Of a stretch of 64,000 nt of DNA, positions 11,709 to 59,689 are shown one piece after another (position 1 is the stretch's first letter; every line of letters starts with the position of its first letter). The notes beneath the pieces are model-generated. The model saw only the letters and a program-made list of their open reading frames with translations, was not told where the DNA came from and searched no databases. The stretch spans positions 13,856,330-13,920,329 of the forward strand of contig OZ316898.1 of assembly GCA_973895155.1 (NCBI GenBank). The letters are read 5' to 3'. Source of the DNA: Marsupella aquatica. Its lineage: Eukaryota > Plantae > Marchantiophyta. Both the position numbers and the translations under genes were made by a program.

Positions 11709-12005
11709 CTCAGGGGTCTCACTATATGGGGACCTCCCCATCGCCTGCGACGTTTTTAGGCCTAGGACCCCCTAAAATGTAAGAAAAAAAATTTATTTTT
11801 TAACCCCTATAAAGTTGGAATATTCTTGGAATATTCTAAAATTTGGATTAAAAAGACCCTAGTATTCTTATAAGTCTCAAAATTGAATTTAAAAGACCCT
11901 ATTGTTCTTCTACAAAAATTCTTAAGTCTTCCCTTAGAACCAATAAAATGACCCTATCATTCGTCGCACGTGATATACCATTTTTGTGGAAGTGAAACCC
12001 CCGAG
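11709..12005. mobile_element. MITE (297 bp), 8-bp TSD, hAT-like
   Basis: TIRs CTCAGGGGTCTCACT / AGTGAAACCCCCGAG; TSD TTTGTCTC; near-identical inverted copy at 59393-59689. Confidence 0.93.
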
Positions 12006-31664: not shown

Positions 31665-32089
31665 CTACATACATATCCAACATGTAAGTTAGATTAAACA
31701 ACTTCTTGTGTCGATGTATATACAAACATAATGAAGGAGATTTACATAGAGAACACAGTGACGGACCAAACGAGAAATATGACCACCAAACGAGAAGTGT
31801 GTTTTCGATTTCGCGAAAAACGGTGAAAAATCACTAAAATTAAGATCAAAAACGCTATTTTGAGGATGAATCCAAAATCGCATCCAACATCGGATTTCAA
31901 ATCGAGATACTGTCGACGTAAAAACACAGAATTGTCACAATCCAGAATTCCGATACACTTCATCTAAAAAAAGTGCAAATTCCAAAACCTGGAAAAACAA
32001 TGCTTTTCACGTGATCCTTCTAAAAGCTAAATCCGAGCGTCAAACAAAACGAGTAAAACACAAGATTTCATTTTCGCCATCAAAATGGC

Positions 32090-32600
32090 AAACTGAAAAT
32101 GGGATACGGCGTATCCCATTTCGGATTCAACTATTGAACATGGACGAAAACCACACCAAATCATTCTCTTGACGCTTCCATTTAACCTCGGGTTAAAAAT
32201 GTTTGAATTTTTAACTGCGGTAAAATTGAAAATTGCGAAAAACTGACCGCGGACTACAGTCAAACCACACAGTTAGTTAAGTTAACCCGACGACATGTCC
32301 GGAAACTTTTTAGCCCATAACGCATGATGAATACGAGATGGGATCCAAGTATCCACTATCGTATTCAACCTCAATGTTTTCCACTTGCAACTTTGCATCA
32401 GGAGATCTTTCGACATGAATACCAACTGAGATCCATGTATCCCATTTTTTTCACAAGTCCAAAAACTGATCGGGAAAACATGAGGATGAATACCAGATGG
32501 GATCCATGGATCCCATCTAGTATTCAACCTCTACATTTTGAAGTTTTTGCATCGCATACCTTGATATTCCAGTTTGAAGACCAACTGGGATCCACGGCGA
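32090..32600. repeat. Palindrome cluster 1 (about 5 copies, some degenerate)
   Basis: TGGGATACGGCGTATCCCA at 32100; GGGATCC variants at about 32338, 32428, 32498 and 32587. Confidence 0.85.
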
Positions 32601-32677
32601 CTTCCTCAAAAATCTACAATTTAAATTTCAGCATTCTTTGAAAAGACAGACTCTCACGTGAAAAAACCCTCGTACGG

Positions 32678-32727
32678 ACCAATCAGGGAATGCCACGTGT
32701 CCAATGCCCCCGAAAACTATAAAAGGA
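32678..32727 (+). promoter_or_regulatory. Putative transposase promoter (CCAAT, G-box, TATA)
   Basis: CCAATC, CACGTG and CTATAAAAG about 160 bp upstream of ATG 32877. Confidence 0.5.
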
Positions 32728-32876
32728 AGAGCTCGCATATGTTTTTCATCTTCATTTCTCGCAATTACTTTGAGGTTTGTTCAGTATTGAGTAGTTGTTT
32801 TCATAGAATACTGTAATCTGAATTTTCTCTGTTGGATACGAATACGTACTCCTATAGAACCCTTGTTTGATTCTCT

Positions 32877-35800
32877 ATGGTGTCTTCAAGTGATGAGTCA
32901 ATTTACAGTTCAGATGCATCTTCGCCAGATGTTGTTCGAAAATATATTCCATCTCGTTTGATGAATGAATTACCAGCCTCACAGAGAGAAGTGCCAGAGA
33001 TTTCATTTTCCTCAAAATCTGAGAAATCAGAGTCTGATTCAGAGTCTTGTAGGAGTGTTGTGGGTGCTCCGATTTCATACTATGTCTCTCCAAGTAAACG
33101 ACGTCTACTTGTAAAGAAGCCTAATGTAGTTCCTACGACAGAGACACTTGGTTCACCACGAACCCCGACAGATCTTCAAAGGCGAAGGCCCCGGTTTTTA
33201 ATGCCAAGAACAACGTTACCATGTAGGCCCGCCCGAAGATCTCCGTTGGTTTTTCCAATGTCTTGTTCTCCGGGAGTGAAGATATCTGTGTCCAGTGTTC
33301 AATCACAGTTTGAGCGAATGAGGAGTCCAAATGTGCCAGAATTGCAGGGAGGGGCAGCCTCGGAGCCAAATTACTCGAATGTTGAGAAACGGTGAACACG
33401 AATTACCTATTTCATCTCCTTCAGTACCAAATTCCTTGGGTCAAATACGAAGTGGGATCCATGGATCCCACTTAGTATTCCCTCGTGTTATTTTGCAGAA
33501 TCCTGTGCCCGAGTCATCGGTCTTACGGACTTCCAACCCGAGTTCCGATGGTGGAATACGAAATGGGATACGCGGATCCCAGTTCGTATTGCGCAACGGA
33601 AAATTACCAAGTCATGACGCAGAACAGCAAGTGGGAAGTTTTCACTTCGAAGTCCCGAAGGACGAATACGAGTTGGGATCCATGGATCCCAATCGGTATT
33701 CCCATCAGTTATTTCATAGAGTGGTAAAACTAACAACATGGGACTTTGAAGCCCTTTGGCGAGGATGCAGTGTGAGGTTTTTGGATCTTCCATTGGACGG
33801 GAAGTGCAGAACGAAAGAGGGAAGAGATCTAGTGTCCAAAAAATTCCTCAGAGATTATTGCGAAGTGAGCTGCCGAAGAGAGGGCCCGAAAATTCAAGGG
33901 TACATGCTAAATTGAAACTTGTCCAAAGATTATTCAATGGTCAAGATGAGCCCTCAAGTCAAGAAGAATCACCTAGGCTGGGATTACAGTCTCAGAGATA
34001 AGTGGGCGGTACTTTGACTGAAGATGTGAATATCATTAGAAGATTTCAAACTAGAAATCTCCGAACACCTATTTCATTTTTAGAAGACTCTGAAGAGAGA
34101 TCAGAGGAGGCTGCAAATGATAGAGAGACTGCTGTAATCTCAAATGTTGTTGAAGAGATCCCGGGAGGTGAGATTGTTCATGAAACAGTTACAGAAAATG
34201 TGGAGAGTGGAAACAACTCTACAGAAAATCTTTTTGTTTTAAATTCTAATTCACTAGAAAATAGTGGGGAGGTAAGTACTCCCGACACTATTCAGGATAG
34301 AGTAGCTAGAGGTGACAAGACCCAGCAAGAAAATCAGAGATCAGATGATTAGAAAAGATAGATTTACCATTGCAAATCTAAAAAAATGCAAAATTAAAGA
34401 TATTTTTAAGTATCCCTGTTGTGACAAGTTTTGCTTGAGGTCTCTGGGTCTAGAGGAATGCTCAAAACAACGCAAGTATTATTTTGGTCTTAAACACTTG
34501 CAAAAAAATATTTTGCTACGAGGTTGTATCATGAACAACTGTAGTACTTCTCGTGGATATAGTGTAAATGGACAACCTATATGTAGAGGAGGATTCAAGA
34601 AACTATATTCTTTAGGTAATAATAGATTGGCAACAATCCATGCAAACATGTTTACAAGGATTGAACAAGATACCTTTTGTAAGGAAGACTCACCTTCATT
34701 TCTAAACTTGGTGGAATGGTTGAAAGATTTTTTCCAAAAAAATATGGATAGTCTTCCCCATAAAGAGATTCATCACTTGCTAGACAATTGGACAAAGCAA
34801 GAGATACATGGAATCTTTGAAGCTGAAACAATGTTGCAAGAAGAACAACAAGTTACATATTCTTATTTTTTGCGTGTTTGGAAAAAAAAGTTTCCAAATG
34901 TACGAATTCCTAAAAGGAGTCGATTTTCTACTTGTGGTCCTTGTACTGAATTCAAGGCTCTTCGGGACAAAGCAACAACTGAAGATGATAAAAGTAAGTT
35001 CCACTAACTATAACCTTCAACTTTAATTTGATGACATGTAATTCAATATTTGTCAAAGTTTATCCTTAGTTATTGATTTTTAATTCATTGCTATTGTATC
35101 ATTTCAGGAAAGTATATCAATGCCCTTATGGAGCATCGAAAAGTACAATCATTGGAAAGGATGAAGTTAGCCAAGCATCGTAAAAAATGCTATGATGAGC
35201 CCAACAAGTATTTGGGTATTTGTATAGATGGTATGGATCAAAAGAAAACAAAGCTACCACATTTTATTCGTTGTCCAAAGAACATGGATGAAAAGTATTT
35301 CATTCCAATACATGTTGTAGGTTGTCTCATCTTCAACAGGAACCTTGTAGCAAAAGTATTTTTGACATATCCCAATATCCATAATGATGCAAACTTGACC
35401 ATACATGTTATTCAAAATGTATTGAATATATGGGATGGGACATTACCAAGAGTGTTATATCTTCAATTAGATAATACCACTCGGGAAAACAAGAATAAAT
35501 TCTTGATGGCTTATCTTCACATGTTAGTAGATTTGAAGATTTTTGACAAGATTAAAGTGGGTTTCTTGTTGGTCGGTCATACACATGACCAGATAGATCA
35601 GATGTTTAGTAAATTTTCGTCTAGGTTAAACAAGCACAAAGCATTTCGCTTGGAGACTCTTGAGGATATTATTCGACGAGCATATTCACCTGAAGCTTTG
35701 ATCATATTTGTGGATGAAGTAGCCAATTTTTGAAAATTTGTCAATGAAAACGACCAGCCAAATGAGAAGGGAGTCTCAGGTAGAGTCTTGAGAGATCTCA

Positions 35801-36710
35801 ATCTCATAACTTTTCAAAGGCAATTCAGATTCAAACGAGTCATGGAGGATGGAAACGAAGAGACAACATTTCACGGGAAACATCTTTCCTGGACGACCCA
35901 GGATTGGGGAGATGCAGTGACGTTCGTCAATTACATTCCAACTTCAAGAATGTGGGTTGCTGCACAAATGTCACTGAAGTCAGCAAAAGGTGTTGAGAGG
36001 GATGATGTCCATGATTCTTCCAATACAGATGGTGCATTAACTACTCTGGTGAAATATGAAAAAGCTATCCAGGAAGGTTTCAATTACTTTGACAATGAAG
36101 ATAAACTTTGGTGGATGAGTTTTTTTGAGAAACAAAAAGATATTATCAAAAACCACCTAGAGGAAGGTGAGTGGTTATTTGAGTGGGTTTGGCCGCAACA
36201 AAATCAAGGTGCACAACTACTTCCAAGGGTGAGAAATGAACTTGTTGAAGAAGGTGTTGATCCAACTTTGTTTGACAAAGTTGCTGGACCACAGAGAATT
36301 ATGTACTCCGGACCTCGACGAAAGCAAGCTGAATTTGGAGATTTCAGAGATATGGAAGTTAACAATAAGTGGTCCATGATATGTGTAGCGGCACACAAGG
36401 ATCCAGAAGGCAAGTTATTTTGGATGGCAAAGGTGTCAAAGATTTTGACAAGAACTGCAGACATTCCTGAGAGAATCAAAATCACATGGTACACAACTGA
36501 GGCAAGTGCTGAGTCTGCTGTTGATGGGAAATATTTCCAGAGAAAGATAATATATCTAATCGACTTCTCCAAGATGAACTAGTTCTATCATCAACAGCGG
36601 TGTATGCATACAACTTTGCACTTTTAAGTACTAATCAAATAGCAGCAAAAACTAAAAAAATTATAGAGTCTGCTATATTAGAGAGAGGTTCTGCACACTC
36701 AGAGGATTGA
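32877..36710 (+). pseudogene. Sola-like DDD transposase, spliced and disrupted
   Basis: Cys-rich N-part (CCDKFC, FSTCGPC); catalytic-type motifs IDGMDQ, LQLDNTTRENKN and GHTHDQIDQMFS; in-frame intron 34994-35107; probable stop at 36708-36710; 5' exon structure uncertain. Confidence 0.85.
33444..33702. repeat. Palindrome cluster 2 (3 copies, 110-bp spacing)
   Basis: GAATACGA..TGGGAT(A/C)C-N3-GGATCCCA...GTATT at about 33444, 33554 and 33664. Confidence 0.88.
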
Positions 36711-38933
36711 GATTGATGTCCTTAAACAGATACATGCATCAATTTTAGAATTTGATCTCGAATGAATTTTCTAAGGTTACATGCTCTTTTACAATTGCAC
36801 CATTTTTCAGTAAATAAAGACTGTGCATCAAGGCATTGTGTAATATGCCATTGAATTCTGATTTCGTCCATATTTTGAAGAATAAATAGACCACAATCTG
36901 AATTGTTTGGTTGTTGAGGTACCTGAGAAAGAATCTTAAAGTTAGTCCAAAGTGTTTAATAATTGAACTAAATAAAAGTTGAAATAACTTTTCAAATCCT
37001 TACCATTGGATTGTATATCTCCACAACTCCCATTGGAACTTTTCCAAAAAATAATTCCCATTCCATTGTAAAATATCTGCAAATTATTATTCAAAGTTAT
37101 TAGTCCAAAGTGTTTATATTTATGTACCACATAAATAAATTCAAATTGAAAAAATGTAATAGAATATATACGTACCTGCTCAGTATTGATCCAATTACAT
37201 GGGTTGAGTGTAGACCGGCGAGAGAGTCTAGATGATACATTTTGATCGAAGATTCAATCCGATCCAAACATATTACAACCAGACTCCAGTGCATGCTCAT
37301 GTGAATTGGCATGAGAATGACCTCAATTTGGGAAAATGGTGGCTTGTAATAATTCCGCATCTTTTGAATTGATTCCAACAGGGTCTCAGCTGGTTCTGTT
37401 TCAATCCTTGAAACAAGCCAAGGGTAAAAAAAAGAGGATAATGTGTTTACTGAGGGAGCCAGATCTCCATGTTCCTCGGTTATTAATTCCATTATTTCAT
37501 CACCCAAATATTGACCGGGTTCAAGTTGGCTCAATGTTTTATTGTCCAAAAGAAATCCACTAGAAGGATTGTGTGAGAATCTATGAAGAACATGTTTCAA
37601 TACAAAATCCTCCTTTGGTTCCTGCAAAGACATTACTTTGTGAAATAAGAACATAGTCCAATCATAATCTTCCTCAATATTTCACAAGTTTGGATCAATA
37701 GATACAACATGAGAGAACTAATCAAACTTAAGTCTACACCTCAAGGAATGAGCCAAGATCAAGTGCCGGAGCTTCATGTTCCACTTCATCCTCTTCATCC
37801 TCATCATTGTCGTTCTCCTCCGCAGTTGTAATAATGCAAGTTCCAGTGGTGAGGGTGCTCATAGTACCACCAATAGGTGGTTGAACCTCAAGCTCATGGG
37901 TCCTGTACGTACCCTCCTCGGTTGCTTCATCATTCAAGTCCCACAATTCATCAAGCGTGACAAGTCAGGTCTGGATACAATCCACCTGGCTTGCACTGAG
38001 CTCCACGGCTGTCACCGGACGTTTTCCTAACAAGGCAGCGCATGAGGTCGAACCACTCCCGCACATAAATCAGCAACCCAATCCCCTGCTTCACTAAAAT
38101 GTTGAACGAACCAATCTGCTAAAGCTATCGGTTTCTGGTAAGGGTTCACTATTTCTCCCAATGGTGTTACACATTTCTTTGTAACACAAGGGGCTTTTAT
38201 GATGTTTACCCTTTTCTCATCATGTTCAAAATTGTACATGTCTCTGGTCCTAATACCACTCTCGTGATAATATCCGATTGACTAGTTTTCAAAAGCCCAA
38301 GCCAATCAATTCTCGGAAGGATGAGCATGTACATTTGGCTTCTCCCAAATTCCAGCCTCTACACCTGCGTTACAAGTTTTTCCAAGAGCATTCATCACAG
38401 ACCAAGTTTGCTGCAAAGAGTGAATCACAACAAACCTCCACATCTTTGAACTTGTCACCTTGGCAAAACAATTCACCATATCCACAATATCACTCTCTGA
38501 AAATGGGACCTCATCATTTTCAGAGCCAGGCGCATTGAATCCATAAGGAATGTCTGCAATTGCAAGTGTGTAATTCCTTTTCTCTACAAACTTATCCAGT
38601 GCCCTGACATCTCCACAATGCAATGTATATCTGATAAAATTTCCGTCAGCATTTTTCCATCGATGGTCACTCGACTCTACTTCAACCGTTTCAATCCGAC
38701 AACGACGGTTGTAGTTCTCAATCGCTTCTTGAACATAATTCTTAAACCCCGGGGGAATAACACTCGAAGTCAGCTCCTCCGTAGGCTTCTCAACCGCATC
38801 GGCACCAATTGCATCCTTGTTCTTCTTCTTTGAAAAAGCTTTCAACTGCAAACGCAAACTTGTTAAAAGAATCTGGAGGAAAGACAATGGGGAGATAACC
38901 ATTTAGGAATTCATACAATCAAATCTGGATGAC

Positions 38934-39332
38934 GAATGCGACATGGGATACTCCGTATCCTAGTTCGTATTCAACCAAGCAAAAACCACAGTCAAACATC
39001 ACCACCGTCAAATAACCACAAGTGAATCCGAGATGGGATACCCCGTATCCCACTTCGCATTTGACCAAGCAAAAACCACATTGAAACATCTCAAACGTCA
39101 AATAACCACATTGAATACGAGATGGGATACCGCGTATCCCACTTCGAATTCAACCAAGCAAAAACCACATTGAGACATCACAAACTTCAAATAACCACAA
39201 GTGAATACGAGATGGGATACCGCGTATCCCACTTGGCATTCAACCAAGAAAAAACCGCATTGAAACATCACCAACATCAAATAAGCACAAGTGAATCTGA
39301 GATGGGATACCCCGTATCCCACTTCGCATTCC
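38934..39332. repeat. Palindrome array 3: five ~90-bp units in intron 38846-39411
   Basis: GAATNCGAGATGGGATAC-N3-GTATCCCACTTCGNATTC starting at about 38934, 39024, 39113, 39203 and 39293. Confidence 0.95.
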
Positions 39333-40680
39333 AACAAGAAATCCACGAAGAAAACCTCCAAACATGGCGAAACAAATAGAAAAGTCCAATCAGTGGAAGG
39401 GGAGAACATACCACATCGGACAATTTCCCACTCCATCTTTCAAGCTCGACAGATTCTGTTTCTTTCGGAAACATTTGTTTGCAAGTCGCCCAGTCTTTCT
39501 GCCCTGACAACTAAACAAAAAGCTTGCTGATTTTCACAAGTTTCTTGTAACTCTCGGCTTCTTTTGCCATCTGCTCCAAAGAGATCATCCGGTCCTTCAC
39601 TTGGAGAAGAAGGGACTCCAAAAATTGGTCATGTTCAATTCCCTGGATTGCTCTCCAAGGTGTCAAGGTAAGGCCCCCTGCAAGCTTATTCAAAGCTTTT
39701 GGAATCGACTGCGCTTTTCCCTTTCCTTTCTTGAGTTTCTTGATTGGTGACTTCTGCTTATTCTGCCCTTTGATCTCCAACTTGTTCCACATCTCAAAGA
39801 TCTGGTCTTGGAGTTCCCAGACCTTACCCGACCTAAACGCAATTTGGAAGAGAGGCTCATGCTTCTTCAGGCTTGTGGCGTCCCCCGGAAAAAACCCGTC
39901 GAGGCAAACCTCCATCGCACACGCTTCTCTAGTCTCCTTGGTTTTTGTCATTCCTCTAGCAATAAAAATCTTATGCATTGTTTGGATTTGATCAATGTTG
40001 TTCATTTTTTTCCTGTACTCCTGATCAATATTATGTTGGATGCTAAGTTTGTGAATGTCCTCCCTTGTGAGACCAGCATACACCCAAGCTTGGAGTTCAT
40101 TGAAGATCTCTCTCCCATAATCCTGATACAATTCTCTCTTGGCCCGAGCACCGTGATTACCTCCAATCACTCGATATCTCCAGCTTGCTGCCTTTTCTGG
40201 GTCCCAGTCTGTCACTGTCGGGCAGTCTTCCGGGATCACAAACAAGACAAATGGCGTCGTGAAATTTGTCGGATTCATTTTCATCAAAGTCTTGATGTTC
40301 TCCACATGCAACCGATCGACTGTTCGAACCAACGTTGAGTTCTCGTCGTCAATATCGTCAACAAGAAGCAGGTTAGTTGTTTTTAGAATAACTGTTGTCT
40401 TCTAAACTCGCTTAGTCTCCATCAACCGAGACACTTCTTCACGAACCACAAGTGTCTCTTCCCGCTGCAAAGCTGTGGTGATATCTGTTGAATCGTTTTT
40501 CTTTTCTTTAACAGCTCCTCTAGATGATAAAGAAAGCCCACCTGACAAAGTTGAAGGAATCTGAGGTGTCTGTGAAATTGGTGGGACCAAAGATGAGACA
40601 ACACTTCCTAGTGCAGAAGGCGCGCGCTTCTAGATGTCACGTCGATCCAATTTCTTCTTGACAATAGCTTCTCCTGACAC

Positions 40681-43600
40681 TGTGGTGCGTCCCATGGCTC
40701 CCTAAACCCCAGAAACCCCCCTTCACAAGCCGATTCCCGCGGGTTTCGCGCTTGGCGAGGCCGTTTCCACGGCTTAGTGGCATGGGACACTGCTAACCTC
40801 CTACTACTACTATTAACATTTTACACACATATACTGGACAGATCCTTCATCGGGTCATGAGATACGTAGCCGGCCTAATCTAGGCCTTCCCTTGTCTTCC
40901 CCTCCGTCTTGTTAGGTATATTTGGATTCCGCCGCCGGAATGATCCCCAATAGGCTTGGTTAAGCCGCTAAGACCTCTCTCAGCTCAACACATCCAACTC
41001 TCACTCCCTTGCTTACTTTCCTTCCTCTATTAGTTGATGTGGGCACTCTTCACACAAGTTAATGCGACACACAAATAGCAAAATGACTCCTTCTGACTGA
41101 GTCATACCATGCACTTGCCATACAAACAGTACATCTCATACACAAGCTCTGCGAACTAAGTCGTGAGGCCAACTCTATTCAGCTCTTAGGCATGAGGAAA
41201 CATGAATATACACAAGGGTCACTGTATGACTAACCGAGAGCTTCTCTTACTACTTGATCCCAGCCCGGCTGGTGCAACTAAAAACTTGCTAAAGAAGAGG
41301 CCCTGAGCTCCCCGCTGCCCAGGTACTTATCCTGGTAGTGGATCCGCCTAATTCCTTGTAGCGTAAGCTTAATCTACCTAACTGAATCTACCTATGTACA
41401 GCGAGGCAGGAGTACAAGTGTTGCTCTTACCAGTGGAACCGCAATCCCACTAAGCTAAGTGTCAGGGACGCCTCCTGGTCCTGATCCTAATCCTAAACTT
41501 AGAGATCTGAGCCCGCCCTGCCCACTCACGCCTCCTCCCTCCATGTCCGCCCTCCTTGAAAGGAGCGGCCCTCCACCACCGTCATGGCAGCGGTGTCTGT
41601 TCCTCAGTGGACACCCCCAATGCTTCCACCTCAGCCACTGCTGTAGGTTCGTTCTCTGACAGATTACCTGCCCTTGACTGAGTCAACTCTCCATCGGCCT
41701 GACTGGGTCCACCCCCGGCAACGGCATCGGCTTCAACATCAGCCTCGGCTATGGCCTCAGCCACGGCTATGGCCTCAGCCACGGCTACGGCCTCAGCCAT
41801 GGCTACGGCCTCCCCTGCACACTCAAGTGGCGGATTGGGTACCTCGGCTTCATTACCGAGTATCCTGGCCTCGGCTTTGTCATCCCCTTCTTCTAGGGTA
41901 GTTGGATCCTCTGCCGTAACCCTACTTGAGGTCGGTGCTGGGTTTACCTCCTTGGTTACCACGGCCTGTGGAGCCGTATTACTCCCTGACCCTGAAGGTT
42001 TCCGCTTCTTCTTCTTTTCTGGTTCGGCAGCTGGCCCCTTCCCCTTCCCACTTACTTCCGGCACTAGTGCAAATGGGGCGGCTTGTCCTTCGGCCAGTAC
42101 CACTCCTGATAACTTAGTGGCCTCAATTTGAGTTGGCCCTGATGAAGCCAAGCACTTAAATACTACAGCTTGTTTCTTCAACCGCTCCGTTTAGTTGTCA
42201 GCTCATCGTTGTAAGTTCTCTAGCTTCCGCGTGCTTTCCTCCAACTCTTCCTGCACTTCGTCCAGGTCCTTGCACGCCTCCTCCAGCTCCTTTTGGGCTT
42301 CCTCCAATTCCTGTTTAAATGCAGTTCTCTCCTCCCGGGTCGCTCTTAACTCCTTGTCGAGCTCTGCAATGATGACACACTCCATCTGGTTCATCTTGGC
42401 GTAAGTCTGATCGAGCATATTGTCCTTCTCACGCAGGTCGGCTTTGAAGCTGGCCGTCAGGGACGCAAACTCCTATTGCAGCGCAATAATCCCTTGATAG
42501 GATTTCCCTAACTCGGCCTCCTTCTTCTCAAGGGCTCTGCGGATAACCTTGAGCTCCCCCTTCAATGCCCTTTCCCTTCTTTGGGTCTCCGCCCTGGCCC
42601 AGTCGTTGGCTGTTATGTGGGCCTCCTCTGTATCCCTCAGCTCTCGCTTCCACTTCTCCCGCTCCTTGATCGCATCGGCCAACTCTTCTTGGGTTCGAGT
42701 CAATTTATTCTTGATAATCCGATTATCAGATTGTGCGGTATCCAATTGGCCCTGCATGATATTTAGCTCATGCCGCTTAATCCGTAGCTCATCTTGGGCT
42801 TTCTTGGCCGCCCTCAGGTCTTTGATTTCGGCTTCCCTTGCCCTGAGCCGACGGATGACCTCGTCCTTCTTGCTTCTTTCCAAAGCCACCGCTTCTTCTA
42901 ATTGACGCTTCTCCAACATCTCCCTCTGAAAAAAGGGTCCATGCTCCAACTCTTCCCCAAAGATGCTGAGCACCAGCTCTCCACACATTTCCCCGTACTC
43001 CATGGCTCTATTTTTAGCATAGGTGGAGGAAGTAGAAGTCATCGGCATCATCCACCGTGGCCTGTGCTCCCAAGCCGCCTTGCGGATCTCTTCTATTATG
43101 GCTGGAGGGATGCTTCGCTTTTCTGCAAGCCGCCTGATGTCCTCTGGCCATTCTCCTCCTCGTAAATCCTTTTCCCTAGCCAGGGCTGCCTCCTTTTCCT
43201 CCCTGATTCGCTCCTGAAATTCCTGCGCCGTTTGTTTTATGCCGTCAAAGCTCAGGGGAGCGACATCTGGTGGGGGAGACTCGGGGCTGCTCTACTGGCT
43301 CGGGTCTCCTCGAACTACTCTTGGGAGCGTGGGGATGAACCGGCCACAGGTCCTTACTCCTGGAACATGATGATCCGACCCGTAGCCGGAGTCATCATTG
43401 CTGTAGTCCTCTACCGCCTCCTCCTCGACTTGGACTACCGGCTTCTCCCGCTGTTCTCCTGGTTTTGTCCTGAACACGGCTTCACCTCTCACCGGTCTTG
43501 GTTCCTCCTCCGGCTTCCGTGTTGATCTCTTGTTCTCCTTGTCGTGGCCGGGAGCTACGGCCTGCTTCTCCTCGGCTTCGGGACTTGAGGCTCTGACATA

Positions 43601-45452
43601 CATCTGGACTCCCGGCTCGTGTTCCGGCCTCCTTCTCTCCTTGACCCCAGTAAAGGGGTTTTCCCTTGTAAGACGGCTTAGGCCCACCTCTGGAGCAGTG
43701 TCCTGCATTGGTGCTGTTGCCGTTGCCGTTGCCATTCTCTTTTCCTTCTCCAGCAATTTCAGCAGATTCTGCATGCCTGGTTGCTGCATCGGCAAGTCCT
43801 TCGTCCTTGGCCTAAACACCTGCTCGATTGTAGGATTGTCGGGCGGGTTGGGTTTCTCCGTTGCCGGCCTCTGCTCCGGGACCTCCTCCGGTGCTCTAGC
43901 CGATAGGGGAAGTACTGGGGCAAAGATTTGACTTCTGGCATACCGGCACAACAGCGGCATGTGATAGCCAAGCCGGGACACGCTTCCCACGCCGATCATC
44001 TGTTGTTCCTCCTTCAAGATCTTCTTCAGTTGGTTGAGGAGGTACCCATTGTAATCCCGACTTGGGTCTGGCCTTTTTGCCAGGTAGACCTGAGCCTTGC
44101 CGATCTCTGCCCTCGGCAAGTTACAGTGCATGGTTACCCGCAAGAAATCGATCATCTCTCCGATGTGCAGGTTGGTGCAGGTGTTCCGGAAGAAGCCATT
44201 TTTTGTTGATGGTCCTGGGAACGACCGAAACTCCTTGTCAGGTAAGGTCTTCCTGGTATCAACCTTGGTCTTATTACCCATCGACAAGCCAAACACTTCA
44301 GCAATCACCCGGGGAGTGAGATAGAAATCCTTCCCATACACCCTTGTGGAATTGGTCTCGGACTCCCATGATCCCACGAATTCTAACAAGTCTGAGTCCG
44401 GCACCTCCGGGTTCAGCCATGGTAATCTTACGAAGGCTTCCAAGCCGGATCCGGCCATGAAGCCTTGGTACTTCTTGGTCTGCATAGCTATAAAGCATGC
44501 ATCCTCCCCCCGTGCAAAGTGTAATTGCACTTCCTCCGGTAGGGTCGCTGCCCAGCCTTTCCAGGTGTCATCGTTTGTTGGAATGGCATTGATGGGGTCG
44601 ACCTCCTCCTCCTCGGCTTCTCTCTGCCTCCTGCTCTGCTGTTCTGCTGGCTTCTTTGGTGCCGCCGACCTCGTTCTTTTTGCCGGGGTGGCCTCTTCAT
44701 TGTTGTTGCCCTTCCTCTTCATCTCGGCTGCCGTGGATGTCTCTCCTAGCACGGTTGCCTTTGTCCACCCCTCCGTGCTACCCTTCAACTCCCAGTGTAT
44801 GTCGTTGCAGCGTTTGATGGCTTCGTGGATGCCGATGACTCTGTCATCGCAAAACAGCAGGTCGTCTAGCTCGTTGCTAGTAGGCGTCCACATGAATTCA
44901 GCCTTGATGAGTTCTCCTCCTAAGAAGGCAGCTTTCTGCAGCTCCCACAATCGAGCGAGCTCCTACCGTTCTCGAGCTGCTCTCTCCGATTCTTCATCCT
45001 CGTAAGTCCCAATGTACTCAGTTGCCCGTTTGAACAGGCATCCCCAAAAATGTGCCGCTTGATTGACGTTGCTCATACCCTTCTCGAGTTGATAGTCGGT
45101 ATTTGTTCCCACCCTGAGCGCTTGCCTAAGCAGTTGACAGTAGTTGGCCGCCCGTAGTCGCCTGCCCAGTTCGTGCTTGCAAATGAGCCACTACTCCTTG
45201 CAAGCGGTCCTTACCCCTCTCCTCCTAAGGTTCTCCCTCCCGTTGGTTACCCCTAGCCGCCGGCACTTAGCGTGCCCTAACCCTAATCATATTCTCTCCC
45301 CTGGCGTCCTTACTTCCGGCCTCGGCTCGGGTTCCATAGTCACCCTTAATTGTTTATATTTTCCTTATTTATGTAACTATACTAAGGTGTTTCTAGGGTA
45401 CACTTCCCTTTTCCCCTTAAACTAGCCCAGTGATTCCTGGCTAGGCATCACA
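40681..45452 (-). mobile_element. Solo-LTR-like unit A (4.8 kb) carrying a gene
   Basis: TGTGGTG...CATCACA ends; TSD GACAC (40676-40680 and 45453-45457); removal restores VAVSGEAIVKK in the interrupted frame; shares the ATTCC(A/G)GCGG(C/T)GGAA...ATACCTA motif with units B and C. Confidence 0.88.
41582..45077 (-). pseudogene. Retroelement accessory-type protein with long coiled coil inside unit A
   Basis: ORFs 43292-44950, 42473-43051, 42203-42418 and 41582-42181; motif LLEFVGSW...VYGKDFYLTPRVIAEVFGL; no gag or pol motifs. Confidence 0.72.
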
Positions 45453-45643
45453 GACACCGCTACTTTAGAACCTTCCCCAGAGAGTTGATCTGCAAGCTTC
45501 CTCTTTGCCGGTTCCTTAAAAGAAACTGTGGCAAATTTCTCCTTTGTCGAGGGTGTTCCAGACATCTCCCCTGACTTTGAAGCCGGATCGGTAGGCTTCA
45601 TCACTTTCAACTTTAAAGGCCGCTCTTTGACGCCAAAGTTGGC

Positions 45644-48600
45644 TGTGACACGGGTACGTGTCACTTAACGGAACCCAGGTCGTAGATTAGGCCATATACG
45701 GGCATTAGGACCGTAGCCATAGCGTAGAATAGCACGTATAGCCGTCGGTTGCCATTATGATTAGATTAGGAGTAGGTTAAGATGACCAAATAATTACGAG
45801 TTCAGGAAAGGGATTATTACGCACGACCGAGGTACGGTGGCGGCAACGGAGTAAAAATCAGTTAGAAAAATCACGCTTGGACCGAGGTGCCGACTTTAGC
45901 TCATTATCAATGACCAAAACGGCCTGGCCTTCTCACGCTCGGGCTCATCCTGGCACCTCCATAAGAGAGGAGCCGATGGCGCTACGGGCCATTTGCTCAT
46001 GTCTACCTTTTTGGAATTCACGGACGTTGCCATCCACTCGCCTTTCTGATCGAATCGAGTCAACCCTTACAAGGAGATTATCGAGGGAGAGGAGCGGAAT
46101 GTGGCGAGATTTAGTCACGATGATCGAGGCCTCCACGAGGAAAAAGACCAGTCGGGTGGGAACGTGGACTCAACAAACCGGACTACGAGGTTAGTATGAC
46201 CCTCACAGCCTTGGGATTTTGGACCTTGTTTGGCGAGGTAGGTGCTAAGTTCTCCGAGACTTACTGGTACTCTTGTCCCGAGAAAGCCGCTTACGAACGA
46301 AGATACGCGAAGCTGGTAACCAAGGTGGCACTAGTTAATTGCGAAAGGACAGCCATCACCAGGGATTCCAGCTACAACGAGCTGCAAGACTACATCACCG
46401 AACTATATCTCAGCGAGGAAGGGCTTAGATCGGTAGCAGAGGCGATTCTTGAGGTCCCAACGAAGTTCTTTAAGTTGAAGGGCAGCCAGCGGCTTACTCA
46501 AGCGGAGTTTGACAAGATTCCAGGGTACCTAGACCAGCAGATCGCAGCCGAAAAGTGCCAAGAAGACATCAGCAAACAACGGGAAGCGGCGCGTAATCTT
46601 ATGTTCCTCGGGGAAAGCTCCAACGCCTTCAACTGGGATATGGCTGCCCCGATACCACCAGTGCCTCAGCCGATGACCACCGGCGTACCGCCGAACCGGT
46701 CCCAAGTCCGTCCAGTAATCAACACAAAGTGTTTTTCGGGTTCCGAGCGAGCTAGTCCGCAACTCGAACAGCGTCCTTGTAAGCAGCCAAGGACTACGAC
46801 GGCCCCCAAATCAACAACGTGGACCAACGCCGCGCTTGCACCTGCCCCGATAAACCCCCCGACCAACCAGACCCGACGGCCCCCGGATAACCCGAAGTCC
46901 AACTTATTATAGGTAATCCGCGTCCCCGAAGTAGTCTGGATCGCGATCAAGAAACTCGAACATGCGGACTATCTAAAGGAGCATCAGTTGGAGCAGTTCG
47001 CTCACTTGCTTTGGAGGCCGTGCACCGCCGGGCCGAAGGAGATTTGTGAGTTCATCTCCAATTTCGACACTGACGCGTCGACCACCAAGGTTTCGGGGCA
47101 GGCCTTATCACTCACGGAGCATCGGTTAACGCAAATCTTCTACCTACCAACCGGGCCAGTGCCGGTGGAAATCCAAATTCGGGATAAGGAGTATACGCCG
47201 TGGCACTTCAAACCTGAGGGTAAGATGAACAACAAATACAAGCAGGGGGCATGCACCAACTTAACCTGTATGGAGCGGCTTAACTTCATACGGACTACCC
47301 TACACATGATTGAGCCACGATCCGAGATTTCCCTCTGCACGATCGTGCAGGTGGAACAATACAAACGACAAAACTGGGCCCAATTCTTCTACCGAAGATT
47401 CTCGGGGAGCTGAAGCGGGCTCAGGGTGGTATGGCTATTGGGGGGAAGACTTACTTGGGAAGTCATATCGCCATTATCCTCGCCTGGTACAAGGCACGGC
47501 GGGAGGCCAGAGGAAAGAATATGGCCACCTCAGCCCCGGCTAATGTCACCCCCGCCCCGGAGGAGGCAACCCCGAGCACGTGGACTACCATCCCTCGGGC
47601 AAACCCCGAGCCGGAAGCCCCGACTAATACTCCGCCACCTCCTCCTGTGGAAATTCCGCCGCCCCCTTCCGTTGAGCCTCCACTACCCGCAGTACAACCA
47701 CCCCCAATCCCTCCACCACCTGAAGATATCTTCCCCTCCCCAGCGCTGACTACAGAGGAGATCGTTGCTCCACCCGAGGAGCCACCGGTACCCGAGAGGA
47801 TGGAGGACTACCAAGTAGCCCCGGGGACCATGGCCTACGACCTGGTCCAGAAGTTTAGCCAGACTATGTCTGGGGAGCTGGCAACATACATCGGACAACA
47901 AGTCTCGGCGTACTTTCAACCAGCCTTCTTCATGTTAGAGCACCAACCACGGATCGTAAGCCGCTTGGAAGAAGAACTCATGGCGAAGGGGAATGAGATC
48001 GGGCGCCTCCAGATGCTGGTAGAGCACCTCAAGGAGGAGGCAACTACCCGCCGCGAGGAGTTAGTCCGCACCGTCGAACAGAGGGACGGACTAACCTAGG
48101 AGTTAAGTGGAGCGCAGGCCAAACTCAAGAAGCTGGACGACACCGTGCTTCAATTACGCTTAGAATCTTCGGCTCGAGTTACCAGCCTGACCGACCTCAA
48201 CAAACAATTCCTGCAGGCAGCACAGCAGGTGGCTAGTCTCTCCGCCGAATGAGATAAATTGCTAGCGCAGGACCAGATCCATCGCGACTCCATCGACCAG
48301 CTCAATCTGGAGGTAGCGCTCCAGACCGAGGCCGATGAAGCTGCAAATGAGGCGGAGGAGGCGGTACGGGACAACAAGGCCTTGCAGGACCGCATTACCC
48401 TGCTCGTCCTCCAGCGGGGAAAACCTTGGCCCACCTCTGATCAAGGCGGCTCGAGGTCTCGTCCCGACAAGGGGACCAGCCCTGGTCCAACCACTGCACA
48501 CACGTAAGGGGTGGTTAGCGAAGGGTGGAAGCAGGCGCCGCGCAAGGCAGTTAAGACAACGACATCTTTTGGTTAGGCGTAACGATAGAATGACTGTCAT

Positions 48601-49458
48601 TAGGCGCCGATTAGCGGCAGTAAGAAGAATTAGGGCCGAATCAGTTAGGATCAGCCAACATAGGATGGAGTCCATCAACGGACTAGAGTTTGTCAGTAGG
48701 CTTGGCCGTTGCCATCCTGGTCGGCACCTTGTCATCGACGGTCAACCAGTCAGTGCGGCGCGGCCAGTAGTCAGTAGGCAGTATCCTCCGGCTCTCCTCC
48801 GCCATTGTAGTATTTAGGCTTCCCCTTCCGCTATGGAAGGGGGAGAAGGCTTAGTTATCTCAGCAAAAGAAAGGTGAGGCACGGGGAGTCCCGGCCTGAG
48901 CAGGGTCAGAGCGCACCAAGGAGTGAGAGCCAGAGTCGAGCTTGCTGGGCAAGTGCGCGGCAGGGCCTCGTAGAGACTGGGCATCGACTGCCGTTGGGCC
49001 TGCTGACCCCCTTTGAAGTCGAGTCAACCATGTAAACTGATGCTTCGCTGAGTAAATGTAGTCTTTTCCCCCTAATGTTTCCGCAAGTAACTGGTGTTGT
49101 GTGTATGCTTTGTCTGGGTAAGGCGCCATTTTAAGGGACGTACCGGGTGCGGACTAATGGTAGGGATTGCCACTCATTGTATGTCACAAGGTCCTGTCGT
49201 GTCGATGGCTTGAAAGGCCCCAAGCCGGGAGTTAGTCCGAGTCACTAACTGAGGGAATATTCCAGCGGTGGAAAACAAATATACCTATGACTAGTACAAA
49301 TTACGCAGGTGTTATACCAGTAAGTATATCGACTTAGCCCGACTTAGGGCTAATAGAGGTCACTACACACCTCCTTGCCCAAACCCTCACCCTTACTGGT
49401 GGTCGAGGTCGCACCATGGCACTAAACTGGATTTAAGGCCCAAGTTAGCGGCGCGACA
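45644..49458 (+). mobile_element. Solo-LTR-like unit B (3.8 kb) carrying a gene
   Basis: TGT...ACA ends; TSD TTGGC/TCGGC (one C>T difference); removal restores VVGADFGVKERP; 3' 600 bp homologous to unit C. Confidence 0.85.
46196..48507 (+). pseudogene. Retroelement accessory-type protein (Pro-rich linker, coiled coil) inside unit B
   Basis: Near-continuous frame with in-frame stops and one frameshift; motifs ICEFISNF...VSGQALSLTEHRLTQIFYL and QNWAQFF, similar to the unit A ORF. Confidence 0.72.
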
Positions 49459-50068
49459 TCGGCTCCAACAACGGACCTATACGCTACCTTCGTAAAATCC
49501 TCAACAACCCTCCAAGACTTCAAGACAAATTTCAAACACCAATAAGAAAAGTCCTCAATCTCCGGCACTTCCGAAATTAGCTGGCAGATCGGGTCATCAG
49601 GAAATGTGTTCATCAAGACCCGATCAATTTTCTCGTAGTTGAGGACAACTACAGTGAAGGCATTGTTCGGAAGAATGCAAAGGTACATTGGAATCTTCTT
49701 CAGCTATTTTGTTTTTGAGTCAGTGATATCCGCCTCCTCGGTGTCCATGACTAATCCATAATGGCAATGGTCTTTACCCTTAACGATAACCAACCACACC
49801 GCTGGACCTTCATATGCTCTATGAATATCCATCGCCCGAGCATCCCTGAAGTACCACCTATTCCTCACGAGTTTCTCCTCCGTGTAAAGGTCTTTCTTCC
49901 AAATCTCATCGACGATGGATGTCCGTGCAGACTGGGTCGAACCAGACGACTTTGATTTGTTCGACATGATCCTGAAAAAGATTGACACACTTAGAACCAG
50001 ACCAAACCACTTGGCATCCAACATCAACAATTGCCAAGTCTGACGCAAAGAACGAAAAAGAGGGAGTT

Positions 50069-50448
50069 GAATGCGAAATGGGATACGCGGTATCCCACTT
50101 CGCATCCAACAACAACAAATGTCCAGAGTCTGATGCAATTAACGAAAAAGAGGGACTTGAATGCGAAATGGGATACGCAGTATCCCACTTTGCATCCAAC
50201 CTCAACAATTGCCTCGAGTCTGATGCAAAGCACGAAAAAGAGGAGTTGAATGCGAAATGGGATACGCGGTTTCCCAGTTCGTATTCAAAGTCTAGAAAGA
50301 GCAAGGAGGTTCGGATGGAAGACTAAAAAGAGGGTGTTCAATGCGAGATGGGATACGCGGTATCCCATCTTGTATTCAATATTGAAAAGAAGGCCAAATA
50401 ATAGAGTTGAATACAAATGGGGATACGGCGTATCCCTCTCAGGATTCA
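50069..50448. repeat. Palindrome array 4: five units in the probable 5'-UTR intron of the MTase gene
   Basis: Units at about 50069, 50159, 50248, 50339 and 50409; acceptor TTTTTCAG near 49972; minus-strand TATAAATA near 50618-50625. Confidence 0.93.
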
Positions 50449-50854
50449 ACAATTAACCAAACGAGGAGGGGAGAGTTTCTTCAGGTTTTACCTATTTTTT
50501 GGTTTCGATTCGAGCAAATACAAAAAGCTATAGAGATGTTGCGGCCCGAGAAAAATGCGGAGGCAAACAAAGTTGAGAAGAAAAAGAAATGAGAGTAATT
50601 TTTCTGACCAGGCACTTCTATTTATACTTTATCACCTTCGTATCCACAGGCGATAAGGTTTCCACAGGCGATAATGTGTATCCAAAAGCGTAGGGTTGGT
50701 GTCCGGATGTTTGTATATTTTTTCTCTTGATGGGACAAGAGATAAGGCATATCCCCAAGTCCTTGTATTCAACCAAATAGATTTTACGCATAGCGAATCG
50801 GGTAACTCTTTATTCATTCGGAATTGTGCCACAAAAAAAACTAAGTTGATATTC

Positions 50855-51445
50855 TTAAAAAGAGTCTTTACAAAGAGCCCATTCAAGATGGCTCTAAACC
50901 AGACTAGAAGCTTCCCCATATATTTCCAAGAGCCTCGCTTGCTCATCTTTCTCAAGATTGTGCCAGTCTTCTTGAAATCGATTTAGGTCAGACCTTGAAA
51001 ATAAACCTAAGAAATCGATTGGAGGAAGATTCGGTGTTTCCATCCTAACAAAAGCTTCAATATGAACATTCTGAAGGGGTTTTCCATCGGGAATGCTTGT
51101 CAGCATTTCATTTACTTCCTCAAGCTGGCTTTTTGCTAGTCTAAGAATACCCCAGACTCGTGTACAAATTGCGAGCTGGTTCCATTTCTTGGAGGTGCAT
51201 CCAAGCCACACCATGGTTTTTAATCGCATCAATCTTTCATCAGCTTGGTTCTTGGAGGAATCAAACTCATCCTCTATACAACAAACTTTCAAAATGGGTC
51301 AAATGAACGTTTCAACAATCTCATCAGGAAGTCCATCCAAAAGCAATCCGGATTCCCTTTGGCCACTTTTTTGTTGAATTTGTTTCTTCTCTTTGTCGAA
51401 TGACATCGCTAACCTTGTAAAGACAGGGTTCTCAGTGACTGCCAT
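50855..51445 (-). pseudogene. F-box-like protein
   Basis: LLDGLPDEIVETFI(W>stop)PIL...LKTMVWLGCTSKKWNQLA resembles the F-box consensus with an insertion. Confidence 0.6.
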
Positions 51446-51621
51446 TCCAAAATAAGAGTGGATACCTGGAGTAATAAATGAGATGGTGAGCTCTTTCTCA
51501 GCAACCTACAAAACAGTGATGGAAAAACTGATTTTATTTCTTTGATCAAAATAAAAATATATTCACAAAATGTTTGACCCAAGAACGTTCACCTAAACAC
51601 TTACACACTAATCAAGAAAAT

Positions 51622-51957
51622 TCAACGCGATAAGTTAACCCAAGGATCTTCGTTCCAAATCCGACAACAAAAATATGCCAATCGATGATATTTGTTTTGG
51701 GCATCACGACAATAGTTACAAGAAGAATTAACAGAGTGCAAACAACCACTCAAACATATCCTCGACCGAATCGGAACTCCATCCTCATTTTTTTCACAAA
51801 ACTCTATTCGGAGTGGATTCAAACTATCATGTGGATCCACGCCTCCGGTCCATAGCGCGCCTAATCCAGGACGAAGAACTTTGAGTGCAACTAATCGCTT
51901 ATACAATCGACGAGCACGTTTCTCAAGGTTTTGATTCTGGACCGCCATGAGACTCAC
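51622..51957 (-). CDS. Small basic, Cys/His-rich protein (111 aa), unknown function
   Basis: Open frame with CLSGCLH...CNYC...H...CC, downstream of a TATA box and a predicted 5'-UTR intron. Confidence 0.45.
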   Translation of the reverse strand: MSLMAVQNQNLEKRARRLYKRLVALKVLRPGLGALWTGGVDPHDSLNPLRIEFCEKNEDGVPIRSRICLSGCLHSVNSSCNYCRDAQNKYHRLAYFCCRIWNEDPWVNLSR

Positions 51958-52155
51958 AAGAGAAAACTTTGTTTATCAAGGAAAGCTTAAGCTTGAGTGG
52001 GTGTCGGTCACTGAAAGGCAGCAAGAGCTTCAATGCGTACAGTTCAGTTGAACTTTGCCTGCAAAACAATCAGTAATCCATAAGGTTTTTCCCATCATTC
52101 AAATAAACTCTAGGTAAATACCACATGGGCAATCAAAACTGGACATTTGAAGAGT

Positions 52156-52550
52156 GAATCCCAAACGGGATACGCCGTATCCCATTTCACATTCAATGTT
52201 GAGGTTTTGACATTTATGGTCTAAGATGCTTCATTTTCGCAGGTTGGATGCGACATGGGATACCCCGTATCCCACTTCGCATCCAACCTCCTTTTTCAGC
52301 TAAAGAGAAAACAAACTGGACATTTGAAGAGTGAATCCCAAACGGGATACGCCATATCCCATTTCACATTCAACGTTGAGGTTTTGACATTTGGAGTCTA
52401 CGATACTTCATATTCGGAGGTTGGATGCGACATGGGATACCCCGTATCCCACTTCGCATCCAACCTCCTTTTTTAGCTAATGTGAAACGAAAACTTGAAA
52501 TTTGAGGGTTGAATCCCAAACTTGATACGCCGTATCCCATTTGGGATTCG
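52156..52550. repeat. Palindrome array 5: five units forming a ~177-bp higher-order dimer, in a probable 5'-UTR intron
   Basis: Units at about 52156, 52246, 52333, 52423 and 52511; donor near 52579, acceptor near 52059; further single copy at about 52859-52898. Confidence 0.93.
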
Positions 52551-54113
52551 TCCTCGCCATTTTCAGGAAGATTCTCACCTATTCGTCAAAACTGATTTTT
52601 GGGGAATACGAGTTTGTATAGATGGTGTGCATTCGTCGAGACTAAGAGTATACAGAGCGAGAAAAAATGAGCGTAAAATTCTCAAGAGATGATCTCCTAT
52701 TTATAGTTTTCTCACTGACCGTGGTTAGTATTTGATTGCAGTTGCATCGCAGTCGGTTAAATGTTATCGTTGAGAAGAATTGTTTTGGAATATTCTTGTC
52801 AGGTAAACCAATATCGGCACTTTTACTGCGTTTTTTGTTTTTTTGGAATTCCGCGGTTGGATCCGAAATGGGATACGCCGTATCCCATCTTTGTATTCAT
52901 GTCGATTTTTCCCATTTTTTCAATTCAAAAAACTAGTTTTTAGTGGGAATACTAATTCCGTATCCAAGACTTTTTTGCCTTAGAAACGTTTTTCGCCGCG
53001 GGCAAAACGAGAAGTGTGGTCACACTTCTCGTTTGGTCCGTCACCGTGTTAGAGAGACATTGCCCTACATACCTCAATGATACCCGCGCTTTGCTGTGCC
53101 TATTGGGCTATATTCTTGACACACAAAGTGTGGGATATCCAAAATCTCTGCAAGGTGGGCATTTCAATAGTGAGCTAAGTGAAAAAAGTGCATGACATGC
53201 ACACCTCGGCAAACAATGTGTCAAACTTGCCAAAGTAAACCTCTATGTTACAACTTGAGGAGAATACATGGATGGGCCAAGAAACATCATACCTCTTGGA
53301 CGCGCAGTCTCACGCTATGCATAGTGCATTATAAAAAAAGACTACCAACCTCCCTCAAAAAAACTAATTAACCTACCCCTCCATGCCAAAATCAAGGTAC
53401 TGCACATCATATCCAAACACAAACATTAGCCTAAAAATGGCTTCACGTTATCATAAGAAAATGTACAACACTATCCTCATAAAAACCCTAAACCAATGTC
53501 TCAAGCAAGACTATATAATAATTGCATCATTATAGCCTAACATATTAGGTATGCACAACCAGAGTAAAATTATCCCCCAAAAAATGAAAATCAAGAACAA
53601 ACCCAAAAATTGTATCCGTGAAGAAGGAACTAGTATGCACAAGAGTCACATGCACATCACGGTCACCCTCCCATTAAAAAACCTGTCATTTCAAATGGAA
53701 AGAAAATGTTAACACAACCATACCCAACCCAAATTCAAAAAACCCCAAAACTCTAGAATCCATACCCAATTCAACCCAAACTAAACACATCACACCCCCT
53801 TTGGGAAAGAAAAAGTGCATCCGAAAGAATTCTACGAGGGGTCCGATACTATAAGAAACGGACAAACCTTGGCAAACAAAAGGCAACCCATTAACAACGA
53901 GGGGTCCGATGTCAAACATATCGGAAGGTCCGATACCAATACCGATGTTCTCGGCTTCGGAAAGTCCGAAGCAATTTGCATCGGACGCAACAGGCCAGAT
54001 TTCAAAAAAGAAGTCCCGACGCTGGTGCAAAGACCCGCAAGTCGGGACAAGCTTCGCACTTGACACTTAGGCTATTGCCGAGGCTGGGAGGGGAGCTCAA
54101 AGGAGGAGGGGAG

Positions 54114-59392: not shown

Positions 59393-59689
59393 CTCGGGGG
59401 TTTCACTTCCACAAAAATGGCATATCACGTGCGACGAAGGATAGGGTCATTTTATTGGTTGTAAGGGAAGACTTAAGAATTTTTGTAGAAGAACAATAGG
59501 GTCTTTTAAATTCAATTTTGAGACTTATAAGAATATTATGGTCTTTTTAATCCAATTTTTGGAATATTCCAAGAATATTCCAACTTTATAGGGGTTAAAA
59601 AATAATATTTTTTTCTTACATTTTAGGGCATCCAAGGCCTAAAAACGTCGCAGGTGATGGGGAGGTCCCCATAGAGTGAGACCCCCGAG
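59393..59689. mobile_element. MITE (297 bp), same family as 11709-12005, opposite orientation
   Basis: TIRs CTCGGGGGTTTCACT / AGTGAGACCCCCGAG; TSD CAAAAATT. Confidence 0.94.

Follow-up and report, generated by a model that had tools for sequence, protein, structure and literature searches.

What recognizes a palindrome that is repeated many times within one transposon and is absent from the DNA around it? This question is raised by a stretch of the Marsupella aquatica genome (assembly GCA_973895155.1, contig OZ316898.1, positions 13,856,330 to 13,920,329 of the forward strand). We call the whole stretch, 64,000 nucleotides long, the window. It contains a plant-type DNA transposon of 21.3 kb (31752-53050), and this element holds 23 genuine units of one palindrome. 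We read them as candidate docking sites, on duplex DNA, for a dimeric protein that the transposon family encodes. A ParB-methylase, with its ParB-like helix-turn-helix (HTH) domain, is the most likely binder, and we put the probability of this reading at roughly one half. A first-pass annotation of the same DNA had already proposed binding sites. Its element-specific motif has stood up, with palindromes better conserved than the linkers between them. The conserved spacing and the Ulp1 part of the binder have not, and this copy gives no support to an active writer.

Palindromes of the window element

The 23 units come from a core-palindrome scan of the window. Beyond them, the scan gave three chance matches only, each with three mismatches (at 42618, 44358 and 61293). 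A search for the half-site (16-nt pattern, at most 2 mismatches) returned 36 matches against 0.25 expected from shuffles, all of them at 32113-52874. The palindromes are thus real and confined to the element within the window, as first reported.

The near-invariant core is TGGGATAC-N3-GTATCCCA. Eight core bases per side are conserved at 90% or more, and the 3-bp centre varies freely. The whole palindrome reaches about 45 bp (GTTGAAT...ATTCAAC), instead of the 39 bp or so first given. The units form two subterminal singles (A1 and G1), two clusters of three units (B and C) and three arrays of five units spaced by about 90 bp (D, E and F; Table 1). The five clusters of the first-pass annotation, with its three five-unit arrays, are therefore correct; it had counted one single unit instead of two. 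A1 and G1 are an inverted pair, 94% complementary across 36 nt. Two core subtypes exist, which had been overlooked. A1, D, E, F and G1 have an odd core, GGGATAC-N3-GTATCCC, and B3, C1 and C3 an even one, GGGATCC-AT-GGATCCC (GGATCC-type). The likeness of the half-sites to restriction-modification targets, suggested in the first-pass annotation, is speculative. Tandem Repeats Finder also describes array F as a 177-bp dimer (2.3 copies, 89% matches).

The units stay clear of the homology-supported coding blocks, and to this extent they avoid coding exons as had been claimed. Many lie in presumed introns or 5' untranslated regions (UTRs), near TATA-like boxes. About 200-370 bp downstream of cluster B come a TATA-like box (32710) and the transposase ATG (32877). 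Cluster C follows, between the exon-1 open reading frame (ORF) and the first homology-supported block of the transposase. Array D separates the ParB-like and methylase coding blocks. Array E is 100-480 bp upstream of the minus-strand ATG at 49967, and array F is downstream of a minus-strand TATA-like box (52698-52708).

The borders of the element agree with those first drawn. A 19-mer is identical in both terminal inverted repeats (TIRs; 31758-31776 and 53026-53044), and AGAG is duplicated at the target site. The TIRs carry another repeat, the 17-mer ACCAAACGAGAAGTGTG, which is unrelated to the palindrome. It is likely a terminal site of the transposase, separate from the palindrome. This leaves the palindromes free for a second binder, and it does not by itself remove the transposase as a candidate. 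A likeness between the 17-mer and the half-site (common CGA..AGTG) needs a 2-nt gap, and we did not use it.

A target-site duplication (TSD) of 4 bp is reportedly the rule for Sola elements, from the work of Bao, Jurka and Kapitonov in 2009. TIRs with a 4-bp TSD, as in Sola-type elements, occur both in the window (AGAG) and in a relative from Riccia, L009 (TAAT). From the ParB-methylase architecture common to Sola1-1_Ec32 (PMC12477816), we infer that DUF7869, the domain of the window transposase, corresponds to Sola.

Motifs of related elements

Our sample consists of eight element copies from about six families: the window element and seven relatives with transposase and/or ParB-methylase. 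Each relative has its own strongly over-represented repeat inside the element, in non-coding parts. It is palindromic in all but one, L015.

Three of the relatives come from Riccia. L009 shows nine copies of TCCATG-N5-CATGGA. All nine lie within the span bounded by its perfect 36-bp TIRs, and 14.7 kb of flanks contain none. L016 holds two elements. Element 1 has 21 copies of TGTATGC-NN-GCATACA against 0.07 expected. Element 2 has ten copies of the L009 motif, and its transposase is 79% identical to that of L009. Thus, two families in one Riccia genome bear different motifs.

In Chara (L013), TTATAG-NN-CTATAA occurs 24 times against 0 expected, clustered beside copies of the ParB-methylase. The remaining motifs are CGATAC-NN-GTATCG in L001, an ENA metagenome contig (6 copies), and TTCAAGC-NN-GCTTGAA in L014, a Logan contig (9 copies, all but one upstream of the ParB gene). 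L015, a JGI metagenome contig, has a 20-mer in forward and reverse copies, about six, upstream of the ParB-methylase.

The places of these motifs recur. They include both subterminal regions, 5' regions of genes, presumed introns and, repeatedly, the ParB/methylase junction. A motif cluster stands between the ParB and methylase coding blocks in the window, in L009 and in L016 element 1. The window motif is absent from L001 and L002, and it is not among the recurrent palindromes of the later loci. Control DNA, taken from the nested transposon and from the parts of the window beyond the element, presents no comparable recurrence. The co-variation of motif and protein across subfamilies, which had been proposed as a check, is positive in this small sample: each family has its own motif, and copies of the same family share one.

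Other searches for copies of the window family gave little. The closest relatives (81-83% identity) sit on Logan contigs. A metagenome scan for the core palindrome found six matches, all bacterial terminator-like hairpins followed by T-runs, and no element copies. A protein-level search with the ORF reading through array D gave no candidate, and a search with transposase exon 1 for close copies found nothing.

Candidate binders encoded by the element

We searched the exons one by one. On the minus strand, the accessory gene begins with a probable first exon (ATG 49967). The nested transposon, the ParB-like block, array D, the methylase block and the Ulp1 block follow in this order. The transposase is on the opposite strand, and the two genes are opposed in most copies that we read.

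Pfam and PDB sequence searches with the ParB-like exon were blank, both with the exon alone and as a 37-sequence profile. A library-wide search gave 152 homologues, and several of these carry a fusion to an N6/N4 DNA methylase (PF01555). The AlphaFold model from 37 sequences has a pLDDT of 87 and a pTM of 0.77. In Foldseek, this model matches Noc, CTP-bound ParB, KorB, Spo0J and sulfiredoxin, with E values down to 4e-6 and probability 1.0 for the top matches. As modelled, the accessory protein is a ParB-type N-domain plus HTH, with the fold of ParB, Noc and KorB.

The binder first named was a ParB-methylase-Ulp1 protein. Its ParB-like fold is recovered in the model, and its fusion to a methylase is seen in relatives. 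Ulp1 is another matter, being missing from all seven related loci. The Ulp1 block is seen in the window lineage only, which suggests that it was captured or fused recently. Among the ORFs of the element that we scanned, none is ParA-like. We do not class this as a ParABS partition system; a chromosomal transposon needs no partition.

The transposase matches PF25273 (DUF7869) with an E value of 1.8e-45 on 35128-35733. Its 368 homologues include proteins from Riccia (48-54% identity), bivalves and echinoderms, and they indicate a host of bryophyte type.

The window copy is dead. In its methylase, in-frame stops lie near 38311, 38284 and 37967, and the frame is shifted at about 38055-38063, at the SAM-binding motif (relative to L001). 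The transposase has a stop, and an 8.4-kb insertion interrupts the element. The match of the methylase pieces to PF01555 is weak (E 0.037), but they carry DIPY, a motif of the catalytic D/S-P-P-Y type; L001, P0142 and P0144 clear the Pfam cut-off. Given the three stops and the frameshift, an active writer in this copy is not supported. What remains here has decayed, so intact copies would have had to supply any activity in trans, and its present sequence is drifting.

Four features favour the ParB-like domain as the best candidate binder: the fold of the domain, the fact that the sites are palindromes, their place in the interior and in presumed introns, and the separate 17-mer of the TIRs. 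Several observations weigh against it. The transposase is an equally available candidate encoded by the element. The canonical CTP-binding box, GERRxRA, is replaced by GGNHGARA in the window and GGNHSxxA in the family consensus, so clamp-and-slide behaviour cannot be assumed. This box presumably stands closer to the GGxH type of Srx and ParB-nuclease proteins. The shuffle tests came after the motifs had been selected from the data. In L001, the nearest relative whose DNA is readable, the ParB/methylase junction is free of clusters, and L009 has none in the intergenic promoter region; thus, no single position is universal. Finally, no sampled locus separates the ParB-like protein from the transposase, L013 consisting mostly of assembly gaps and L002 and L010 being without their 5' parts. 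For the same reasons, we rejected L013 as a case of ParB without transposase, and we consider L002 and L010 weak as controls with transposase and no ParB. Across families, motif similarity compared with ParB or transposase identity did not point to either binder.

The first alternative is that the palindromes are subterminal and internal repeats bound by the transposase. The N-terminal domain of this DDE enzyme would bind them as a dimer for the transpososome, and the ParB-methylase would be unrelated. The models are the BED domains of hAT transposases at subterminal repeats, or the cysteine-rich domain of piggyBac on an internal palindrome. The Hermes BED domains give a precedent, since they bind subterminal repeats (PMC10368747). 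Units are present within about 170-470 bp of each end in every element with both ends visible (A1 and G1 of the window, L009 and L016 element 1). Because of this flanking, the transposase stays a serious rival. The inverted pair A1 and G1 also fits it, and so does the sharing of one motif by L009 and L016 element 2, which tracks the similarity of their transposases. However, most units are kilobases from the ends. For array D, the distance is 7 kb to the left end and 14 kb to the right, and the array sits in presumed introns, an uncommon setting for sites of a transposase. The TIRs bear a duplicated 17-mer of their own, and perfectly symmetric sites give no information on the orientation of an end. 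Besides, of the seven copies in which the ParB-methylase gene is visible, six have clusters beside it or within it (L001 is the exception). On balance, we consider the transposase a somewhat unlikely binder.

Linkers, spacing and hairpins

Compared between arrays, the palindromes match at 154 of 180 positions and the linkers at 55 of 96 (Fisher, 4e-7). The linkers had been described as different in each array. This is so for D, whose consensus linkers resemble the others no more than shuffles do; a likeness of D to the F 'a' linkers, visible per unit, failed to beat shuffles on the consensus sequences. In contrast, the linkers of E and the 'b' linkers of F are homologous, with a common exact 11-mer and an 88-nt ungapped inverted match (72%). 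Therefore, some arrays at least arose by duplication, and the 90-bp period common to E and F is at least partly inherited.

The repeat period also varies by family. It is 90 bp in the window, then 42, 21, 71-144 and 69-120 bp elsewhere. Consequently, nucleosome phasing is not a trait of these families, and the conserved spacing on which the first-pass annotation built it does not hold.

These duplications suit a second alternative, in which the arrays are neutral minisatellites. A palindromic seed would have been amplified by slippage or unequal exchange and spread by gene conversion, with no binding function. The arrays are indeed tandem (81-89% unit identity), and a dead copy drifts. Nevertheless, independent families with different motifs show the same kind of distribution, including dispersed single units. 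The palindromes are far better conserved than the linkers, their half-sites are nearly invariant around a free centre, and the control DNA is without such recurrence. We hold a purely neutral origin to be very improbable.

The units can also fold as hairpins (stems up to 21 bp, -10 to -32 kcal/mol). The hairpin energy has no strand bias, and so the transcribed strand is not favoured. Pairing covariation does not exceed that of shuffles, its score being reached by 24 of 500 and its percent paired by 58 of 500. These two results do not fit selection for an RNA hairpin, and recognition of half-sites in double-stranded DNA fits better. Intronic hairpins processed to small RNAs, or enhancer sites for a host transcription factor, would agree with the stems and with the many units in presumed introns and 5' UTRs near TATA-like boxes, but they are very improbable, given these hairpin results and the two motifs in one Riccia genome, where a host factor would not predict a different motif per family.

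Comparison with known systems

ParB-family proteins (ParB, Noc and KorB) bind short palindromes as dimers. Their sites include parS, the sopC array of 43-bp repeats bound by SopB on the F plasmid, the dispersed KorB operators of RK2 and the Noc sites. The window element resembles these systems in its ParB/Srx N-domain with HTH, and in short palindromes with conserved half-sites that are multi-copy or tandem on the element encoding the protein. KorB-type sites sit in promoters. The differences are several. Here the carrier is a cut-and-paste transposon of a eukaryote, a ParA partner is missing, the box is GGNH instead of GERR, and a DNA methylase is fused to the protein. At 45 bp, the units are longer, and they often lie in presumed introns.

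TnpA of En/Spm (CACTA) recognizes 12-bp subterminal repeats, and VANC of VANDAL21 recognizes short non-coding repeats. In both cases, an element protein other than the transposase recognizes a short motif, differing by family, in the non-coding parts of its own element. The effect is on expression, epigenetic state or pairing of the ends. In the DNA sampled, the motifs described here are likewise confined to their own family and different between families. On the other hand, the folds are unrelated, and the sites here are true palindromes in tandem arrays. The candidate binder carries a DNA methylase, so it would be a writer, unlike an anti-silencing factor, which takes methylation away.

The subterminal repeats of hAT and piggyBac elements (PMC10368747, PMC11707139) are also repeated motifs near both ends, distinct from the TIRs. 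Those repeats are targets of the transposase and are at most a few hundred bp from the ends, whereas the window units are mostly internal.

A further likeness is with Sola1-1_Ec32 (PMC12477816). From the part of this source available to us, it has the same gene pair on one element, a Sola-type transposase and a ParB-methylase, and a similar size (21.5 kb there, 21.3 kb in the window). There, Sola1 ParB-methylase proteins are suggested to bind and modify their own transposon. Likewise, the accessible parts of two other papers report that phage ParB homologues activate DNA-modifying enzymes (PMC13229309) and document eukaryotic ParB-HTH methylase fusions (PMC4738411). The accessible text of the three papers names no cis-sites. 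So, self-binding by transposon ParB-methylases was already proposed (PMC12477816), with no target known as far as that text goes, and the new element here is a set of candidate family-specific target sites. To the same text, our analysis adds repeat clusters that are specific to each family and mostly palindromic, seen in relatives from bryophytes, charophytes and metagenomes. A Ulp1 protease is a further gain of the window lineage.

If the ParB-like domain is the binder, it might nucleate at the clusters, like SopB on the 43-bp sopC repeats or KorB on dispersed operators. This would bring the fused methylase onto the DNA of the element itself. Then, 6mA or 4mC might mark the element as 'self' and protect its expression. 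Bridging between clusters may also draw together the ends of a 7-21 kb element for excision. As a tentative and wider proposal, possible and held with low confidence, plant and algal Sola-type transposons would carry a self-contained module of phage or plasmid origin, a 'ParB-parS plus writer'. The family palindromes would be its loading sites, and the ParB-methylase would deposit 6mA/4mC over its own element and perhaps bridge the ends. If so, each family would gain a private epigenetic identity that co-evolves with its own sites.

Over-represented, family-specific candidate sites, at the ParB/methylase junction in three families, make the self-binding idea testable. The handles are a single protein domain, a single 19-bp core and a Riccia family that is intact and has perfect TIRs. 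A confirmation would mean a eukaryotic use of the ParB-palindrome principle, and a transposon that writes, rather than erases, a DNA mark on itself. If the transposase proves to be the binder, the same sites would still define what this superfamily of giant transposons, itself poorly studied, requires in cis.

Feature coordinates and other observations

Table 1. Features of the transposon in the window (window positions; palindrome spacing is between successive centres, in bp).
Feature	Position	Strand	Details
Left target-site duplication	31748..31751		AGAG; same 4 bases at 53051-53054
Left TIR	31752..31801	+	two direct copies of the 17-mer ACCAAACGAGAAGTGTG (31765, 31785)
A1, single subterminal palindrome	32087..32131		centre 32109; 357 bp from the left end of the element
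Cluster B, 3 units	32325..32529		centres 32347.5, 32435.5, 32506.5; spacing 88, 71; B2 degenerate
Transposase gene, decayed	32877..36683	+	DUF7869 DDE block 35077-35730; in-frame stop 35731-35733
Cluster C, 3 units	33439..33704		centres 33461.5, 33572.5, 33682; spacing 111, 110; even GGATCC-type core
Ulp1 (peptidase C48) coding block	37103..37681	-	PF02902, E 1.4e-10
N6/N4 DNA methylase pseudogene	37827..38902	-	DIPY motif present
Array D, 5 units	38931..39334		centres 38953 to 39312; spacing 90, 89, 90, 90
ParB-like coding block	39397..40476	-	ParB/Srx N-domain + HTH
Nested unrelated DNA transposon, 8.4 kb	40913..49287		GC-rich (50-55%); 35-nt TIRs (TAGGTATATTTGG...)
Probable first coding exon of accessory gene	49707..49967	-	ATG 49967; acceptor-like tttttcag 4 nt upstream
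Array E, 5 units	50066..50450		centres 50088 to 50428; spacing 90, 89, 91, 70
Array F, 5 units	52153..52552		centres 52175 to 52530; spacing 90, 87, 90, 88; two unit types
G1, single subterminal palindrome	52856..52900		centre 52878; 172 bp from the right end of the element
Right TIR	53002..53050	-	inverted pair of the 17-mer ACCAAACGAGAAGTGTG (within 53002-53037)

In L011, the ORF upstream of ParB is weakly matched by the probable first exon of the accessory gene. Between arrays E and F, three minus-strand ORFs (50635-50982, 50897-51298 and 51625-51972) have no Pfam match and none in the relatives. They may be a third lineage-specific gene, or non-coding.

Some relatives show further features. 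In L013, a short ORF (41165-41758) between ParB-methylase copies has a weak Piwi-domain match (E 5.9e-5), in a locus made largely of assembly gaps. L002 (2711-2740) and L010 (3359-3388) present one conserved, unrepeated hairpin with a 14-bp stem (AAAAGTGGTGCTAC...) downstream of the transposase. In L009, a 28-bp tandem satellite (2243-2660, about 15 units, each with CACGGAG-NN-CTCCGTG) lies about 2.9 kb outside the left TIR of the Riccia element.

The nested transposon splits the minus-strand accessory gene and contains no palindrome units. Its large ORFs (43295-44962, minus strand; 46124-48096, plus strand) matched no Pfam family. In its right TIR (about 49255) we find GGAATATTCC, which is similar to another palindrome, of the GGAATATTC type. 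The latter occurs three times in the window outside the 21.3-kb element, at 11814-11840, 16518 and 59558-59584. These palindromes may be relics of the family of the nested transposon.

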